DNA of 64,000 nucleotides from Lepidodermella squamata (GCA_047495785.1 JBLDXI010000002.1:2542001-2606000); one strand, 5' to 3'; counted from the stretch's first letter, positions 12-53,474 are shown. The notes: generated by a model from the letters alone, not told the origin. Numbers and translations are program-made.

Positions 12-3000
12 ATGGCTAATACAGCAAACCTGGCAGATTTAGCTCACCGCGAGTACCAAGCCGGGAATTACGAAAGAGCGGAGCATTATTGCCTTCGCTT
101 GTGGCAACAAGAACCCGATAACACAGCTGCTCTACTATTGCTAGCTTCAATTCATTTTCAAGCTGGCGAACTCGACAAATCTTCACACTACAGCCAGTTG
201 GCGATTCGGTTGGATCCAATGTTAGCAGAAGCCTACAGCAATTTGGGCAATGTTCATAAACAGCGCGGACAGTTGGTCGACGCATTGCGAAACTATCAAA
301 ACGCCGTTCGTTTAAAGCCAAATTTTGTGGACGGCTACTTGAATATGGCAGCTGCCATGGTGGCTGCCGGAGACCTGGAACAAGCGATTCAAGCATATAT
401 CACAGTCTTAACAATCAATCCAGTGAGTTTAAATTCAAATGAGTTCGATTGATTTTTATATTTCTGTGCGATATATTTCAGGATCTATATTGCGTTCGAA
501 GTGATTTGGGGAATTTATTCAAGGCCCTTGGAAAGCTCGATGAAGCCAAGGTTTGTTGTGTTTCTCATCTTATTTTATGTATAGGCCACTAACATAGCTT
601 CACTATTTATGATTTCCTATATGGTTACGGCTTGAAAGATATATGAGATCACTTAATAACATGTTTATTTTGATGCTTTTCTTCACACCAACAACAGGCA
701 TCAGCTCGAGTATCAAGTTGTTATCTATTGACTACGTAGAAAATACCCAGAAACTCGAGCTGTTTCACGGGGGCTTGAAATTGCAAAATTTGTGGGTTTC
801 TAATTTCTTTCTTCAAAGAAATTCATGATGTGTTAAACGGCTTGGGTTCTATGTATAAATGAAGTCAAAGTGGAGGTGATGCCCGCTTCCTACTCGATGC
901 CGAGCCACGCGCAATCTCTTCTCGCCTGGAAAGGTTTAAATTGATTCTTTCTGCCTGAAGGTAAGGCGGCGGTCTCAATCACTACCACGCTGATTGTATG
1001 TTTGCTGTTGATATCATACACATAACGGCTTGCGATTTTGATCCGCTATACCCAATCTCAAAAAACTTGAAATCTGGATCAACTTGAAGAATTTTACATT
1101 TTCCTGCAATTTGACGTGATTACCCCGACCATACGTTATGGAACCATCTTTGCAATGTTTGAACGAGTCGCGAAATCAGTCCAATCAATTGTAAATGAAC
1201 CTAATTTTACGTGTGATGTTCGAAATTGGACTGGAGACGTGACATAGTGTGGAGTTCTTCGCAAAGATTTGAATGGCTGTTATTCAAATATAAGTGAATC
1301 AGCCAAATTTATTGCGACGAGTTTCACTGAATTTTTCTGCAAAAGTGGTTTTACAACGTTGAAGGCGCCGTTAAAATCGCATGCAATTGTCTAATAATTC
1401 CATTTCAGGAGCTGGTGTGATATTGAGAACTTGACATTAATATTGTTTTTATTGCGGCTGATCCAGGCTTGTTACGTGAAAGCTATCGAATCTCAGCCGA
1501 CGTTTGCTGTCGCCTGGTCAAATCTGGGTTGCATTTTCAACGCCCAGGGCGAAATTTGGCTAGCGATCCATCATTTTGAAAAAGCCGTCCAGCTCGACCC
1601 GTCTTTCGTCGACGCCCACATCAACCTCGCGAACGTCCTTAAGGAGGCTCGAATTCTCGACCGAGCAGCTACTGCCTATGTCAGAGCGTTACAGTTGTGC
1701 CCGAATAATGCTGTTGTACTCGGAAACCTGGCCTGCGTGTATTACGAGCAGGGCCACATTGAATTAGCCGTTGAAACTTACAGAAGGGCGATAGAATTAC
1801 AGCCTAATTTTCCTGACGCCTACTGCAACTTGGCGAATGCTTTGAAGGAACAAGGACGGGTGGCTGATGCTGAAAGGTGTTACGAAACTGCTTTACGGCT
1901 ATCCCCAGGTCACGCGGATTCACTCAAGTATGAATGATTAAAATTAAAAAATTTTAAGGCGGAATTTTATATTTTTTTCAGTAATCTTGCCAATATCCGT
2001 CGTGAACAAGGCATGCTGGATGAAGCAGCTCGTTTGTATCGGAGAGCTTTGGAGTCTTGCCCTCATTTTGCGGCGGCTCACTCGAATTTGGGCAGTTTAC
2101 TACATATGCAGGGCCGTCTGGATGAAGCGCTTGTTCATTACCGCGAGGCGATTCGTATCGCGCCAACATTTGCTGATGCCTACTCAAACATGGGTAATAC
2201 CCTGAAGGAAATGGGCGATGCGGCCGGGGCGCTACAATGCTACATACGTGCGATCAGTATTAACCCATCATTCGCCGATGCTCATTCTAATTTGGCGAGT
2301 GTTCACAAAGATTGCGGCCAGATTCAGGAGGCTGTCGTCGCCTACCGCACTGCCCTTCGCCTGCGACCTGATTTTCCCGATGCGTATTGTAATTTAGCGC
2401 ATTGCCTTCAGATGATTTGCGAGTGGTCTGACTATCAAGACCGGATGCGACGAGTTGCGACTATTGTGAAAGAGCAGCTTGAACGCGGCCGGCAACCGTC
2501 AGTTCATCCTCATCACTCGATGTTGTACCCTCTGTTAACCCATGAGCAGCGGAGAAAGATAGCCGCAAGTCACGCTCAGTTGTGCCTCGACCGGGTCGCC
2601 CCGCTTCGAGCGCTTTTTCAGCCAAAACCTGAGATTATTTCCTCGAGTAACGGACAGCGGCTGAGAATCGGCTATGTCTCGTCAGACTTTGGAAATCACC
2701 CAACTTCACACCTTGTTCAGTCAGTTTTCTTCAACCACGACCGCTCGAGGGTTGAGGCGTTCTGTTACGCGTTGAATGGCGACGACGGCACAGCTTTTCG
2801 CTCGAATATCACCCAGGAGGTTGAGCATTTCGTCGACCTGAGCGCCCCGGCTTTCACCTGCCCCCGCCGGGCGGCCGAACGAATTGCGGCTGATGGTATT
2901 CAAATCCTCCTTAATCTAAACGGCTACACTAAAGGCGCCAGAAACGAGATATTCGCCTTGAAACCAGCCCCGATACAAGCGTTATGGCTTGGCTATCCGG

Positions 3001-4686
3001 GTACCAGTGGCGCGTCATTTATCGACTATTTAATTACTGATACGATAACATCGCCGCCAAATGAGCCAAGTTCGGATGAGCAGTACTCGGAGAAATTGGC
3101 TTTTATGAGTTCTACGTTTTTCGTCGGTGACCACATGCGAATGTTTCCGCACCTTCGTAATCGATTGGATGTGACTTTTGTCATAAATCAGGCCGACCCG
3201 GCCGTCTCTACGTCACTCACCGTTGTATTCAATAGCTGTAATATCGACACGATAGTTCGTGCAGTTGTTGCCGATGTTTCTCGCTTGAGTGGAGTTGCCC
3301 CGGTCCCAGTTGCCGTTACCTCGGCTAGTAATATCCCGGAGCCCGTTGTTTGCCAATGGTTTTCAGCCAGGATCGAATGCCCGCCCGGGTCGTTTCAACA
3401 CCCTATTGTTTCTATGCTTCAAAACGGGCAGCCTCATGTGTTATGGAACGGCGTGCTTGTGATAAATGGTCTTCACTTAGCCGCATTGAGGCCTCGAGTC
3501 GGGTCGGGCGAAGAACCGTTCCCCCACAGTGCCTGTGTCCCCAATTCGAGCCCGGCTCAAAGTGATGAGAAAAGCGATTTCTCGCAACTGACCTACCCAC
3601 TAGCCGTAGCAACTGCACGTTGTCAGTACGGTTTCCGCGAAACTGGACCGATTCTCGGCAACTTCAACCAGCTGTATAAACTAGACCCGGAAACTTTTTC
3701 AAGTTGGATGCGAATATTGCGTCAAGCTCCCACTGCCATGCTTTGGTTGTTGCGTTTCCCGGCTGCTGGGGAGCAGAACGTCCTGCTGGCCGCTGATCGC
3801 GAACAGCAGCAAGCCGACTTTCAATCGAACAAAATCACTATCCCAAATGATTTATTAAGGAGGAGAGTTATCTTAACGAACGTTGCGACTAAGGAAGAGC
3901 ACGTTCGACGCGGCCAGTTGGTCGATGTTGGTCTAGACACTCCTTTGTGTAACGGCCATACTACGGTAATTTTTATGAAAAAATGTGAAAAATTAAAAAA
4001 ACCCACCTTAATTTTTTCAGAGTGCTGATTTGCTATGGACCGCCGCTCCTATTGTTACGCTGCCCTTGGAGACATTCGCGAGTCGGGTAGCTGCCAGTCA
4101 ACTCGCGGCTCTCGGAGTCGGAACTGAGTTGACGGCGATTGATCGAAATAATTACGAACAAATCGCGATTAATTTGGCGACAAATTCGTCATTGCGGCAG
4201 CAGTTCCGCACCAAGATCTGGGCCGCGCGGATTAGGTCGCCGCTATTTCGAGTAGATTTATACGCAAAAGACCTGGAGGATGTGCTGGCGAAAATGTGGC
4301 AAGCGCACGAAGACCAGAATAAACATTCTCCAGTCCCTGCTCAACCACAACAGCAGCAACAACTGCATCCTCACCACTCGTCTTCAGTCGAAATTCAGTT
4401 GAGGCAACCCAGTAGTAATAATCCGGTGCAACAAGCTGCGGTAGAACCCGACCACTCATCCGCTCACAACTTAGCAGAAGATCATCGAATTCGTAACCCG
4501 GGCCACGCGTTCAGTTCGGTCGCTGTTAGTCGTAGCTCTCTTCGCTCGACGGTTTCAGCCTCGTCTGCCTCGACCGTCCAGCCGGCTGGTTCGTTGAGCA
4601 ACAGCCCTGGGCGGTTGGTGAATAACCACAACACGCACGACTACTACTCGTCACACACGCTCGATACAAACATTGGCTCGCACTAA
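12..4686 (+). CDS. OGT: O-GlcNAc transferase (TPR repeats + GT41 catalytic domain), 5 coding exons: 12-422, 482-550, 1467-1927, 1982-3965, 4021-4686
   Basis: The spliced translation matches animal OGT: [108 protein letters not shown]. All four GT..AG junctions keep frame. Confidence 0.97.
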
Positions 4687-48712: not shown

Positions 48713-49573
48713 TTGTTTTGATTTTGTAATTGAATCAATAAATGCAGTTAAAGAAGGCTAGACTTATGTGGCCTCGCAATGACGGGTGTCTTCCACGGTA
48801 CAGGGTTTCATTCAATTAGACAAGTTATTGTGGGTGATACTCAGCTGTCAAGACACATTTTGTGCGATATAGCGCTAGTTCTAATTGAGTGATACCTCGC
48901 ACGTGCTGCTGTCATGATGCACAAATTTCTACGCATAAGTTGTGTTTAGCTTGAATATTTTTATCTGCCGTCTGCTCACATTTAATTTCCGGTGCTAAAA
49001 CAAGCTGAAACGATTGATGGAACTGAAGGTGAGCTCAAGTACACATAAGCTTCGTCACTTATCACGCCCCGACAAAATTCGCGTTATACTATCGATCGAT
49101 CTTTTCCAGGTCAAAGACACAAACTCAGCATCACGAGTGTTTATAGCTTGAGAAAATTATATGCGCGAGACATATTGAACATACCTTTTTTAGATTCGGA
49201 AGTTAGCAAACAACTTTCCGCTGGCGGGAGACCGCCTGCGAAATGATACAATTTTCATGATTCCAAGCGCATAGCAATGCCATCGGACATGTTGATCCAT
49301 CCAGTCCTCAACGATGTCTGCCTTTACTAGGTTTACTACGCACGTGTCAGCTAACTGATCATAATTCAAGGCGGCAAGACTTGCTGTATAAAGCCGTGAA
49401 AACTGTTAACTAACCATATCACTTTTTCCCTGTCCTACTACAAGACAAGAAGCATCCATACCAATTATAATCGCGAACCTTTGTATAGGTTAAATTGTCC
49501 CTGTTTTAAGATTATCCAATGACATGCATCCTCATGCGCATCGACCACTCAATCGTTTTGACTGATCGGTGAT

Positions 49574-51457
49574 ATGGATTTGCAAACGACAAAGAGAGAC
49601 TGTAAGGCTTCGTCGAGCCCCCACGACTATCTTTGCATGGTTGGTTTAATTTCCAAATAAATTTACGCGGTAATTAATCACGTTGTTTTCAGGTATGCAA
49701 CCGGAAAATTGAAGCAACTGCCCAAATTTCACCGCTACCTAATGATGGTTGCCCAGACCAGCTTCCCCTTGTTTGTGGAGCTTGCAAGGTATAAACAATA
49801 TTCCCCGCGTTATGCCATTTTTCCAATGCATTTTCTCTCACAGAAATTCTATTGGCGCAACCGCAGAGCTGACGCAAAAACTCTTGGCAAGTGCACATGC
49901 GCAAACCGCTCCTCTCTCGCATCGAGGCCATCTTCTTCCAATGCCCAACCTTATTCGAGCAATTTTATCATGTGCAGGACTTGCCGATACTTTCGTTGCG
50001 AAGCAGCCATCCTACGCCAACAAAGTGACTATTCTGTCAATCAACAGCTGTCGAGTGGCGAACCTGACCTAGAGAGCCCAGACCCGTCGGGGAACAATAA
50101 GAGGAATTCACTTCAACTGGTTCCATGTCAAGTCTGCGGTGCATCCAGTTCGGGATATCATTTCGGAATTATCAGTTGCGAGGGTTGTAAAGGGTTCTAT
50201 CGTCGGTCGCTTACAAAGCATACTGAATACAAATGCTCCTTGGAGTTTGCTCCGCCTTCATCAGCGAATCCTCGGCAGCATGATAGAAAGAAATGCAAGC
50301 GGTGCCGCTTTAATGCCTGCGTAAAGGCAGGTATGTCCAACGAAGCTGTGAGAACCGGCAGGCATTCAATGCAACGGCGAATGCAGACGACCCTGTTTGT
50401 GAAAAAGCTAGCTGCTGAGAATCGATTATTGCTCAGTAGAACCTTCCGGAGGCGCCGAAGGAAGCGACTTATTGTGAAAGAGGACGAACGTGGCAGCACC
50501 ACGGACGAGTCTAAACGAAACAGTGGTTCGAGTGGCGAGTCTTACGAATGGAAGCCTGATTTATCTCAGCTTATACCGATAGCAAGACAGCCGCCTAAAG
50601 TCGTTCGGCTGAGTGAGTATCTTCAACGTAACCCTATCCCGCCCAGCTCACCTGACGTTGACGTTGACTGGTCGCATTTGAATATAGGCGACATGCCTTT
50701 CAGCGTGCAAAACGTTGCGCAATCTGCAGTTCGAGCTCTCGATCACTTGACACCACTCGTCGGCATTCACGGCAAACCTCTAAAGCGAGACATGCCCCCG
50801 CAGGAAATTTGGTCCACCTATATCGCTTCATGTTTCGAGCCACACCTTAATTGCGTTCTTGGGTGCGTTCGGTCCCTACCCGGATTCAATAATATTGCGG
50901 TTCAAGATCGGACAAAGCTCTTCAGCCACGCGTTTTTTCCGCTTTTACTGGCTTATGTTTCTTTGAGTTACGACGAAAATAGCGCGGCAGTGAACCTCTT
51001 GTCCTTTGCTAATGAAGAATCAACGGAAATCATATCTGAGCTGTTGCAAATGACCCAGGAGCTGGAACTGTGCCGCGAGCAGCTCAGAGACGCTGCTACC
51101 GGCATGAAAAATTGGAACCCAAGCAAGACAGAATTCGCCATGATGTGTGCTCTCTTGTTCTTCAACCCTGATGTGCCTGATTTGGCAGACCCTGGTAAGG
51201 TCAACGTCATGCGGCAGGTCTACGAGTTCGTGGATGCTCAAATCAACCCGGCGATAAGTGGGAAACCCTTCACAACTCGTGCTTCAAATTGCTTCACCAG
51301 TCATCGCTTCACAATAATTGTCGGCTATTTTCAGCAAACCGTTCAACTATTTGCCCATTTACTTTCAAATATCAAATCGAGAAGACCTGAATTCCTGCGA
51401 AGCCATCCGCTATTCGCGGAGATTTACAACGGAATCGCAGGGCATCTTCAAGACTGA
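49574..51457 (+). CDS. Nuclear receptor with two tandem DNA-binding domains (2DBD-NR); exons 49574-49639, 49693-49788, 49844-51457
   Basis: Spliced DBD1: CMVC..CGACKKFYWR..CTC..CRTCRYFRC. DBD2: PCQVCG..GYHFGIISCEGCKGFYRR..CKRCRFNACVKAGM. LBD signature: VRSLPGFNNIAVQDRTKL, ALLFFNPD, AF-2 PLFAEIY. Confidence 0.88.
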
Positions 51458-51875: not shown

Positions 51876-53474
51876 ATGATCAGAACATTGCTTGTATTCA
51901 GCGCTGTTTGCTCGCACTTCCTTTCCACCACGGATGCCAAAGCTCTTCCGCCTGACGGTGTCCTGGTATGACCGCTACATTTGTGGATATTAGGGCAGTG
52001 TAATTTTTCTGATACATAGGAACGCTATGACAAACAGCTGTGGCGAGCTGCTTTTTACGGTGATACATCTGCGGTAAACTTTTGGATAAATGCAGGAGCT
52101 CGTCTTGAGAGTAAGGGTATGGCGGGTTCTACGCCTTTAATCATTGCGGCGAATAACAACCATACTGAAGCAGCTAAAGTTTTGCTGGACGCCGGGGCTA
52201 ACGCTAACGCGAAGGACTTGTGGCTTAACACAGCTCTAGCAAGATCAGTTGCCCACCTGCCCACAGCTCAACTTCTTCTGAGCAAAGGAGCAACAGTTAA
52301 CAACATCGATTGGAAAGGCGATACAATCCTGATGTTGGCTTCGTCAGCAGGTGCCACCGACGTTGTCCCTCAGTTGATGGACAAAGGTGCAGGAGTGAAC
52401 GAGAGAAACGAGAAAAATGGTTGGACTCCTCTTATGTATGCGGCTCTCTACGGTTTTCCTGAAACGGCGAAGGCTCTCATTAGCAAGGGTGCCGATCTCG
52501 AAGCTACTGATTACTTCGATGGCAAAACGGCATTGTCAATCGCAGCTGAGAATGGGCGACTTTCTACAGTTCAGGCTCTGTTAGATGCGGGGGCCAAAGT
52601 AAATCCGGTATCTGAAACAAAAGGGACAACTCCACTGATGTTAGCAGCGAAATACAGGCGAAATGACGTGGTCGCGTTGTTGCTTGAGCGTGGAGCTGAG
52701 GCGGACACTTTGGACCCCGGTGACGGAAAGACGCCCCTGATGAAAGCTGCTTCCGCTGGTTCCTTGGCCAGCGTTGCAACTTTGTTATCAGCTGGCGCTA
52801 AGGTAAACCGGAGGGAGAAAACGCGTGGCTGGAGTGCACTGGACTTTGCCTTGCGAGATGGCGATAACCCAGCGGTTGTGAAATTACTCCTTGATAACGG
52901 AGCCAACGTTTCTGGCGTAGACCTACATGGCCAAACCCCGCTGTTTCACGCCGATGGTTTTGTAAATCTGGAAGCGATAGACATGTTGCTAAATGCATCA
53001 GCTGACATCAACGCCCAGGATTCGAACGGCGCCACCCCTCTAATGGCAGCTGCATCGAATGGCGATGATAGGAAGTTGTCCCGATTGTTAGAGGCAGGAG
53101 CGAATGTCAACTCAACGACTGGAGACGGCAGCACGGCTTTGATGTTCGCGATCAAACGAGGCCGGCCTCAGGCTGTCACCATGCTTCTTGATAATGGAGC
53201 CAATGTCAACGCGAAAAGATCTGATAGTTTTACGCCCCTTTTAGTGGCAGTTGATTCTGGTAAAACTGACTTGGTCGAATTATTACTTCAACGTGGGGCT
53301 GATCCAAGGATGAAGGATGAAAATGGAATGACTGCGGCGGATATAGCTGCAATTCGAGAGTATCGCTGCATGGCTTCAGTCTTAAACCAGGCGATCAGCA
53401 AGGACTCGCTGATCAAAGGAAACGGAACAATCGTCGTCCAACGTTTGCCTTGCTTACACGACTACGACTATTAA
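51876..53474 (+). CDS. Ankyrin-repeat protein (~12-13 repeats) with N-terminal signal peptide; exons 51876-51965 and 52020-53474
   Basis: Repeated G.TPLM.AA..G....V..LL..GA.VN units. The upstream exon MIRTLLVFSAVCSHFLSTTDAKALPP joins in frame through a 54-nt intron. Confidence 0.88.

Follow-up and report, generated by a model that had tools for sequence, protein, structure and literature searches.

A predicted two-DBD nuclear receptor with a remodelled first DNA-binding domain in Lepidodermella squamata

Nuclear receptors that carry a pair of DNA-binding domains (2DBD-NRs, NR7) form a little-studied subfamily. In the catalogue of Wu and LoVerde (2023, PMC10497141), the group 2DBD-NRA, or NR7A, comprises the Schistosoma receptors 2DBD-NR alpha, beta and gamma, and members from Owenia, Crassostrea and rotifers. 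The P-box of these receptors is CEACKK in the first domain (DBD1) and CEGCKG in the second (DBD2), the zinc ligands are spaced C-X2-C-X13-C-X2-C in finger I and C-X5-C-X9-C-X2-C in finger II, and 17 to 22 residues separate the two domains (PMC10497141). Within 2DBD-NRA the finger spacing is nearly uniform, the first P-box is nearly fixed as EACKK, the G-box follows the consensus RXGRQ(P/S) and the pre-grip has 5 residues. A His-containing finger is reported in none of the two-DBD receptors of that catalogue, which makes no mention of gastrotrichs (PMC10497141). An earlier note on the DNA analysed here had proposed that two small upstream exons complete a hidden first DBD in what would be a divergent member of this subfamily; the P-boxes and canonical spacing it used for comparison agree with the published ones.

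The window, that is, the whole stretch analysed, is 64,000 nucleotides of Lepidodermella squamata DNA (G000:C2:2542001-2606000; animal DNA, 43% G+C). The 121-Mb assembly to which it belongs contains well over 150 nuclear-receptor DBD matches. At the locus of interest, the ORF list gives a single long frame at 49709-51457. When three exons are joined, the gene extends from 49574 to 51457 on the plus strand and encodes a predicted protein of 591 residues, with the following parts (window coordinates):

49574..49639, plus strand: exon 1, with the start codon, a short A/B region and the first DBD1 zinc ligand (Cys 49634-49636, in ...YLCM), from translation
49640..49692, plus strand: intron 1, 53 nt, GT..AG, phase 0, donor GT at 49640, in-frame TAA as codon 7
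49693..49788, plus strand: exon 2, with the second Cys of C-X2-C (VC), the 25-residue finger-I loop and the start of the P-box (CGACK), from translation
49789..49843, plus strand: intron 2, 55 nt, GT..AG, phase 0, in-frame TAA as codon 2
49844..51457, plus strand: exon 3 as a whole, beginning KFYWRN, from translation
49844..49999, plus strand: DBD1 part of exon 3, with KFYWR, C-X-C in KCTC (49892-49900), a 24-residue loop and C-X2-C-RYFRC (CRTCRYFRC, 49973-49999)
50000..50125, plus strand: linker between the two DBDs, 42 residues from Cys to Cys, with disorder predicted
50126..50335, plus strand: DBD2, with a canonical finger I, P-box CEGCKG and a finger II without Cys6 (C-X19-C-X2-C); Pfam zf-C4
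50336..50368, plus strand: C-terminal extension (CTE), with the 5-residue pre-grip SNEAV and the G-box RTGRHS, from translation
50741..51457, plus strand: ligand-binding domain (LBD), its start at about 50741 being an estimate (the Pfam match covers only 50807-51193), with the AF2 core LFAEIY at 51410-51427 and the stop codon at 51455-51457

Direct reading and exon-by-exon translation bear out the exon and intron layout of the earlier note, with introns of 53 and 55 nt that preserve the frame, and reproduce every element of the motif chain it had put forward, C-X2-C-X25-CGACKK-FYWR...C-X-C-X24-C-X2-C-RYFRC. Stop codons fall within the first seven codons of both introns, so that only splicing yields a continuous frame. 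Exon 3 is open over 537 codons in this 43% G+C genome, and the AF2 core ends 9 residues ahead of the C-terminus. An in-frame TGA lies 15 nt 5' of the ATG at 49574.

Several features of the surroundings may be recorded here. Upstream, the closest AG that has a pyrimidine tract (region 49509-49573) is a candidate acceptor, possibly for trans-splicing, 63 nt 5' of the ATG. Between this site and the start codon there are three upstream ATGs, and one uORF of 17 codons that stops 1 nt short of the start codon. Immediately 3' of the receptor, a single ORF (52119-53471) encodes a 451-residue ankyrin-repeat protein. Elsewhere in the window are an O-GlcNAc transferase gene (2013-4025; Glyco_transf_41 and TPR repeats) and, on both strands of 13957-43556, a cluster of class-C GPCR-like genes, in which five long ORFs have ANF_receptor and two of the five also 7tm_3.

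That the two upstream exons belong to the gene is supported by several comparisons. The window contains a single motif of the exon-2 type, compared with 0.005 per Markov-1 shuffle, and one each of the motifs of the exon-3 type, compared with none in 200 Markov-1 shuffles. Four loci, from two species, have the junction CGACK/gt..ag/KFY: the window gene with an intron of 55 nt, L045 (a metagenome contig from a related species) with one of 58 nt, and L046 and L047 (two tandem genes on contig C48) with introns of 846 and 681 nt; the sequences of these four introns are mutually unrelated. Intron 1 interrupts C-x/V-C at a codon boundary that is identical in L041 and L049, the latter being the own-genome orthologue of metagenome protein P0002, 220 kb further along C2, and the homologous intron of L041 is 48 nt long and in frame. 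Overall, splice-site positions are kept in four or five related genes. Finally, the paralogue L050, on C24, carries this region in one exon (MEVMER..FTCQVC-X91-CGACKKFYTRCKAK..ECTC): the segment L050:3059-3484 (G000:C24:5297058-5297483) contains finger I, the 91-residue loop, an uninterrupted CGACKKFY and C-X-C without any intron. The joined peptide predicted by splicing of the window gene thus exists unspliced in a relative. We consider that the upstream exons are real; the junctions are predicted by comparison among loci, and this comparison is strong.

Two word-index protein searches, with the whole of exon 3 and with its first 180 residues, gave no protein from this organism and returned only relatives from metagenome contigs, at 52-59% identity. 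As a separate observation, 16 residues of P0002 correspond to a read-through of the 48-nt intron inside the first C-X2-C of DBD1 (L041:2660-2707), which means that database proteins of such animals, when they come from prokaryote-style gene finders, can carry retained introns.

Exon 3 matches Pfam zf-C4 (PF00105, exon-3 residues 94-165, E 1.8e-20) followed by Hormone_recep (PF00104, exon-3 residues 322-450, 50807-51193, E 2.7e-7), the succession of zf-C4 and receptor-type LBD that characterizes the nuclear receptor superfamily. The DBD2 model (residues 92-174) is well formed and matches solved receptor DBDs at Z 9-9.8, with an rmsd of about 2 A over 64-73 residues. For placement within the superfamily, a maximum-likelihood tree was built on DBD2 and LBD, DBD1 being left out; it is unrooted, with a modest outgroup of 15 classical receptors of the NR1, NR2 and NR4 types, and one of its rows, L022, was trimmed to DBD1 rather than DBD2, which leaves the branches cited here unaffected. 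A 100/100 branch sets the 15 classical receptors apart from a side that contains the window gene and the two-DBD receptors of Owenia and Crassostrea. The phylogeny with 2DBD-NRs that the earlier note had proposed therefore puts the gene on the two-DBD side. There, it groups with metagenome protein P0001 (98/99), inside a 100/99 clade that includes L007, a canonical two-DBD receptor of this genome, and the tandem-array receptors of C54 and C24 belong to the same clade as the window gene and L007.

This placement, which is obtained outside DBD1, is joined by a second C4 module on the N-terminal side and by an LBD with an AF2 core, as is typical of the 2DBD-NR (NR7) subfamily. The marks of the 2DBD-NRA group, on the other hand, are only partly present. 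In place of the P-box module EACKK-EGCKG, DBD2 has EGCKG but DBD1 has GACKK, and spacing is non-canonical in both domains (X25 and C-X1-C-X24 in DBD1, C-X19-C-X2-C in finger II of DBD2). The linker, which the earlier note had put at about 40 residues, counts 42 from Cys to Cys, compared with 17-22 in the published group and, by the same counting, 22 in Owenia and L007. The pre-grip SNEAV has the expected 5 residues, and the G-box RTGRHS departs from RXGRQ(P/S) by a His for Gln, as in L007 (IGRHT). Because these marks are incomplete, we assign the gene to the two-DBD subfamily and regard it as a divergent offshoot, not as a regular 2DBD-NRA. The conserved splice positions, the intron-less paralogue peptide, the tree made without DBD1, and a G-box, a pre-grip length and an AF2 core of 2DBD-NR type agree with the divergent two-DBD receptor initially claimed, and support the conclusion, drawn from sequence, that the gene is a two-DBD nuclear receptor (NR7) from a lineage-specific offshoot in which DBD1 has probably been remodelled.

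How far has DBD1 been altered? All eight zinc-ligand Cys are kept, and so is the motif of the reading helix, C-x-A-C-K-K-F-x-x-R. The finger-I loop, however, has 25 residues versus the canonical 13, finger II is C-X-C-X24-C-X2-C versus C-X5-C-X9-C-X2-C, the D-box is down to one residue, and the first P-box residue is Gly where canonical domains have Glu; the translations (CGACK; X25; X24) thus confirm the Glu-to-Gly change and the lengthened loops that had been reported. The 13-residue loop of finger I normally touches the DNA backbone, and the residues that do so are not recognisable in the finger-I loop of DBD1. The domain was rightly called hidden: when the DBD1 pieces are searched one by one, Pfam gives zero matches with E allowed to rise to 10. 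With hhalign, the second halves of DBD1 align to classical receptors at 29% probability (E 5.9e-4), with Cys7 to Cys9 in the right register.

Comparison with relatives indicates which parts of DBD1 are constrained. In the alignment of exon 2 with 7 relatives (A2), C28, A30, C31 and K32 are invariant, and in that of exon 3 (A6), F2, R5, K16, C17, C19, C44, C47, R48, R51 and C52. Among relatives that are 20-50% identical, the invariant set therefore consists of the Cys ligands, the Ala and Lys of the P-box, and the Phe, Arg, Lys and Arg of the helices. The eight Cys and the helix also align with DBD1 of canonical members (alignments A1, A2 and A3). Loop length varies: finger I has 25 residues in the window gene and 42, 43, 45, 79 or 91 in relatives, finger II has 21-27 residues among relatives, and the inter-DBD linker ranges from 25 to about 110; the loop sequence is also free to vary.

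AlphaFold models, also proposed in the earlier note, were obtained for single-exon pieces, namely the first 180 residues of window exon 3 and the paralogue L041, which has seven of the eight DBD1 Cys and lacks the first. In the exon-3 model, one helix spans residues 2-8, where the reading helix ends, and another spans residues 45-69, from Cys7 of DBD1 onwards; pLDDT is below 50 in the DBD1 loop (22-40) and in the linker (70-87). In the L041 model, one helix coincides with the P-box (49-62) and a second with Cys7 (102-111), their pLDDT being about 82-83, and the finger-I loop is disordered. With both models, the match lists of Foldseek and VIA were filled by DBD2 and speak neither for nor against DBD1. 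This check is thus answered in part: in these models of a half-domain and of a paralogue, the helices stand at the positions expected for DBD1. The models fit a receptor-type module with floppy insertions, in which zinc binding is putative.

The Gly-first P-box is common to five genes, four of them from this genome (the window gene, C48-A, C48-B and C24:5299k) and one from a related species (L045), and the Gly codon is GGA or GGC in the four loci checked. In an unrooted tree of DBD2 and CTE these five genes make up one clade (91/91). Since the Gly is shared by the whole clade, the substitution is old and has been retained, and does not reflect private decay. GACKK had no match in the 8.4 million papers and preprints searched, nor in the P-box table, alignment and supplements of PMC10497141.

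DBD2 is also peculiar in this clade. In the four readable members (the window gene, P0001, C48-A and C48-B), it is devoid of Cys6 and has one His near Cys7. In finger II of the window gene (50234-50305), the single His (50279-50281) stands five residues before Cys7 (QHDRKKC), and in the other three it stands four residues before (LHQSKC, EHQMKC and NHMARC among the three). A reasonable interpretation of these motifs is that the second zinc site of DBD2 is a putative Cys-His-Cys-Cys site.

P0001 was considered as a possible orthologue of the window gene, and rejected: the DBD1 exons of its contig (MEVIER.../VWLNFKVPLLCGACK) mark it as the orthologue of the C24 paralogue, L050 being the own-genome orthologue of contig L045, which encodes P0001. 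As P0001 pairs with the C24 paralogue, no orthologue of the window gene is known from the databases searched. Two further observations concern the family in this genome. A related receptor on the minus strand of C2 (L048, G000:C2:2465000-2474999) has the AENRLL motif and a DBD2 with Cys6, and its N-terminal ORF is without the DBD1 motif. Either this receptor derives from a two-DBD form and is left with one DBD, or its DBD1 may be located further upstream. The tandem receptor pair is present twice, at C48:551601/564006 and C31:89648/75611, with near-identical scores, so that C31 and C48 look like haplotypes or duplicate copies of one region.

The question is then what such a domain could do. 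The earlier note had left the choice between an altered specificity and a protein-interaction module. We hold it most likely, with some reserve, that DBD1 is a working two-zinc module that enters the DNA major groove with an altered half-site preference. DBD1 would fold as a two-zinc module despite floppy loop insertions, and the Lys and Arg conserved in its helix would still make the contact to DNA. We propose that its half-site preference changed because the contact from Glu to base was lost, a precedent being the 3-ketosteroid receptors, whose Gly-first P-box CGSCKV goes along with a half-site change from AGGTCA to AGAACA (PMC3908500). DBD2, with CEGCKG, would read an AGGTCA-type half-site, the long flexible tether would permit variable spacing between the two sites, and the LBD, with its intact AF2 core, would provide dimerisation and activation.

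A possible but less probable scenario is that DBD1 is a zinc module that is spliced in and does not read DNA, serving in protein interaction, dimerisation or autoregulation, while DBD2 alone binds DNA. Much of what is unusual in DBD1 would fit: the base-contacting Glu is gone in the entire clade, the 13-residue finger-I loop that normally touches the backbone has given way to loops of 25 to 91 residues, the D-box has a single residue, a tether whose length differs among paralogues, between 42 and about 110 residues, speaks against a fixed two-site geometry, and Pfam and hhalign barely see the domain. However, the Lys-Lys and Arg with which helix 1 reads DNA are invariant beside the Cys among paralogues that otherwise share 20-45% identity, and would be needless in a pure interaction module; moreover, steroid receptors do combine a Gly-first P-box with DNA reading. 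It is this conservation of the reading helix that leads us to favour altered specificity over an interaction module.

A bolder extension of the altered-specificity reading, for which we have little confidence at present, is that the Gly-P-box clade as a whole constitutes a new DNA-recognition variant. DBD1, with GACKK and a C-X-C finger II, would recognise a non-AGGTCA half-site, DBD2 would carry the Cys-His-Cys-Cys site, with the conserved His in the place of Cys6, and the tether lengths of the four paralogues would set distinct half-site spacings. If this were true, duplication together with tether length would diversify composite response elements.

Could the upstream exons instead lie outside the mRNA? 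The protein would then start within the long ORF, for instance at the ATG of MHFLSQKFYW or that of MCRTCRY, and would be a one-DBD receptor with a relic half-finger. Such in-frame ATGs do exist, three more ATGs lie upstream in the putative 5' leader, and the two word-index searches returned no transcript-derived protein of the organism. Nevertheless, CGACK/GT and AG/KFY recur at four loci of two species around introns that differ in both sequence and length, the junction is uninterrupted in L050, and the exon-2 motif is expected by chance only 0.005 times per window, so that we tend to dismiss this explanation as very improbable. Equally hard to credit is that the locus is a decaying duplicate, a pseudogene of the receptor expansion whose odd DBD1 results from erosion, for in spite of the well over 150 receptor DBD matches in the genome and of the want of a close orthologue in the databases searched, exon 3 is open for 537 codons at 43% G+C, the eight DBD1 Cys, DBD2, G-box and AF2 core are all intact, and the odd features are conserved characters shared by the clade and not private lesions.

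The window gene and its paralogues show what DBD1 can accommodate: both finger tips have taken up insertions that are tens of residues long, the D-box has shrunk to a single residue and the base-contacting Glu is lost. Kept throughout are the zinc ligands and, on the helix, its Lys-Lys...Arg face, so that the constrained parts of the domain are set apart from its unconstrained ones. As the most compact natural version, the window gene is a convenient construct for probing DBD1. In addition, where annotation relies on domain matches, receptors of this kind are wrongly counted as having one DBD.

Nematode 2DBD-NRC receptors likewise combine two DBDs with divergent P-boxes, in genomes where the receptors have greatly expanded (PMC10497141). 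The window gene differs in its 5-residue pre-grip, its RxGR G-box and its AF2 core: 2DBD-NRC receptors have an 8-residue pre-grip and lie outside the spiralian/deuterostome group, and the A. avenae members have the G-box RDRRGP and are without an AF2 core (PMC10497141). The 3-ketosteroid receptors (GR, MR, PR and AR) resemble it in the Gly at the first P-box position, where a half-site-contacting Glu otherwise stands, yet they belong to an unrelated subfamily and have a single DBD. Their other discriminating residues, Ser and Val, are Ala and Lys in the window gene, and its target sequence can therefore not be deduced from theirs.

Closer to the gene, L007 (G000:C17:2780674-2781270) and its metagenome relative P0012 share the 100/99 clade and a GRH in the G-box region, with a DBD2 identity of about 41% between the window gene and the L007/P0012 type. 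L007 differs by its textbook C-X2-C-X13-CEACKK, C-X5-C and CEGCKG, and its 22-residue linker, which all lie within one exon, and by having two DBDs that Pfam recognises. The closest genes are the Gly-P-box paralogues, C48-A and C48-B (with twins on C31) and C24:5299k, which are alike in the long loops of both DBD1 fingers and in the C-X-C of finger II; an AAENRLL motif after the CTE is common to the Gly-P-box genes. Long DBD1 loops, C-X-C and common intron positions are also found in a CEACKK paralogue, C2:2816k, and in the metagenome orthologue P0002. Among all these the window gene is the most compact. Its finger-I loop has 25 residues, compared with 42-91 in the other relatives compared, and its linker has 42, where the other Gly-P-box genes have between 50 and about 110. 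It carries both introns, whereas the other relatives have one or none.

With 2DBD-NRA, finally, the gene shares the pair of receptor-type zinc modules that precede a single LBD, the DBD1 helix C-x-A-C-K-K-F, a DBD2 in which F-[FY]-R-R comes after EGCKG, a pre-grip of 5 residues, a G-box of the RxGR type, the AF2 core and its position in the tree. It differs by GACKK instead of EACKK, a finger-I loop of 25 instead of 13 residues, a DBD1 finger II of C-X-C-X24 instead of C-X5-C-X9, a linker of 42 instead of about 22 residues, a DBD2 without Cys6, and the His for Gln of its G-box (RTGRHS), and none of these departures is found in the published alignments searched (PMC10497141). The two-DBD receptor class is thus a known one; what is new, relative to the literature and catalogue searched, is the GACKK, long-loop variant of its first DBD.
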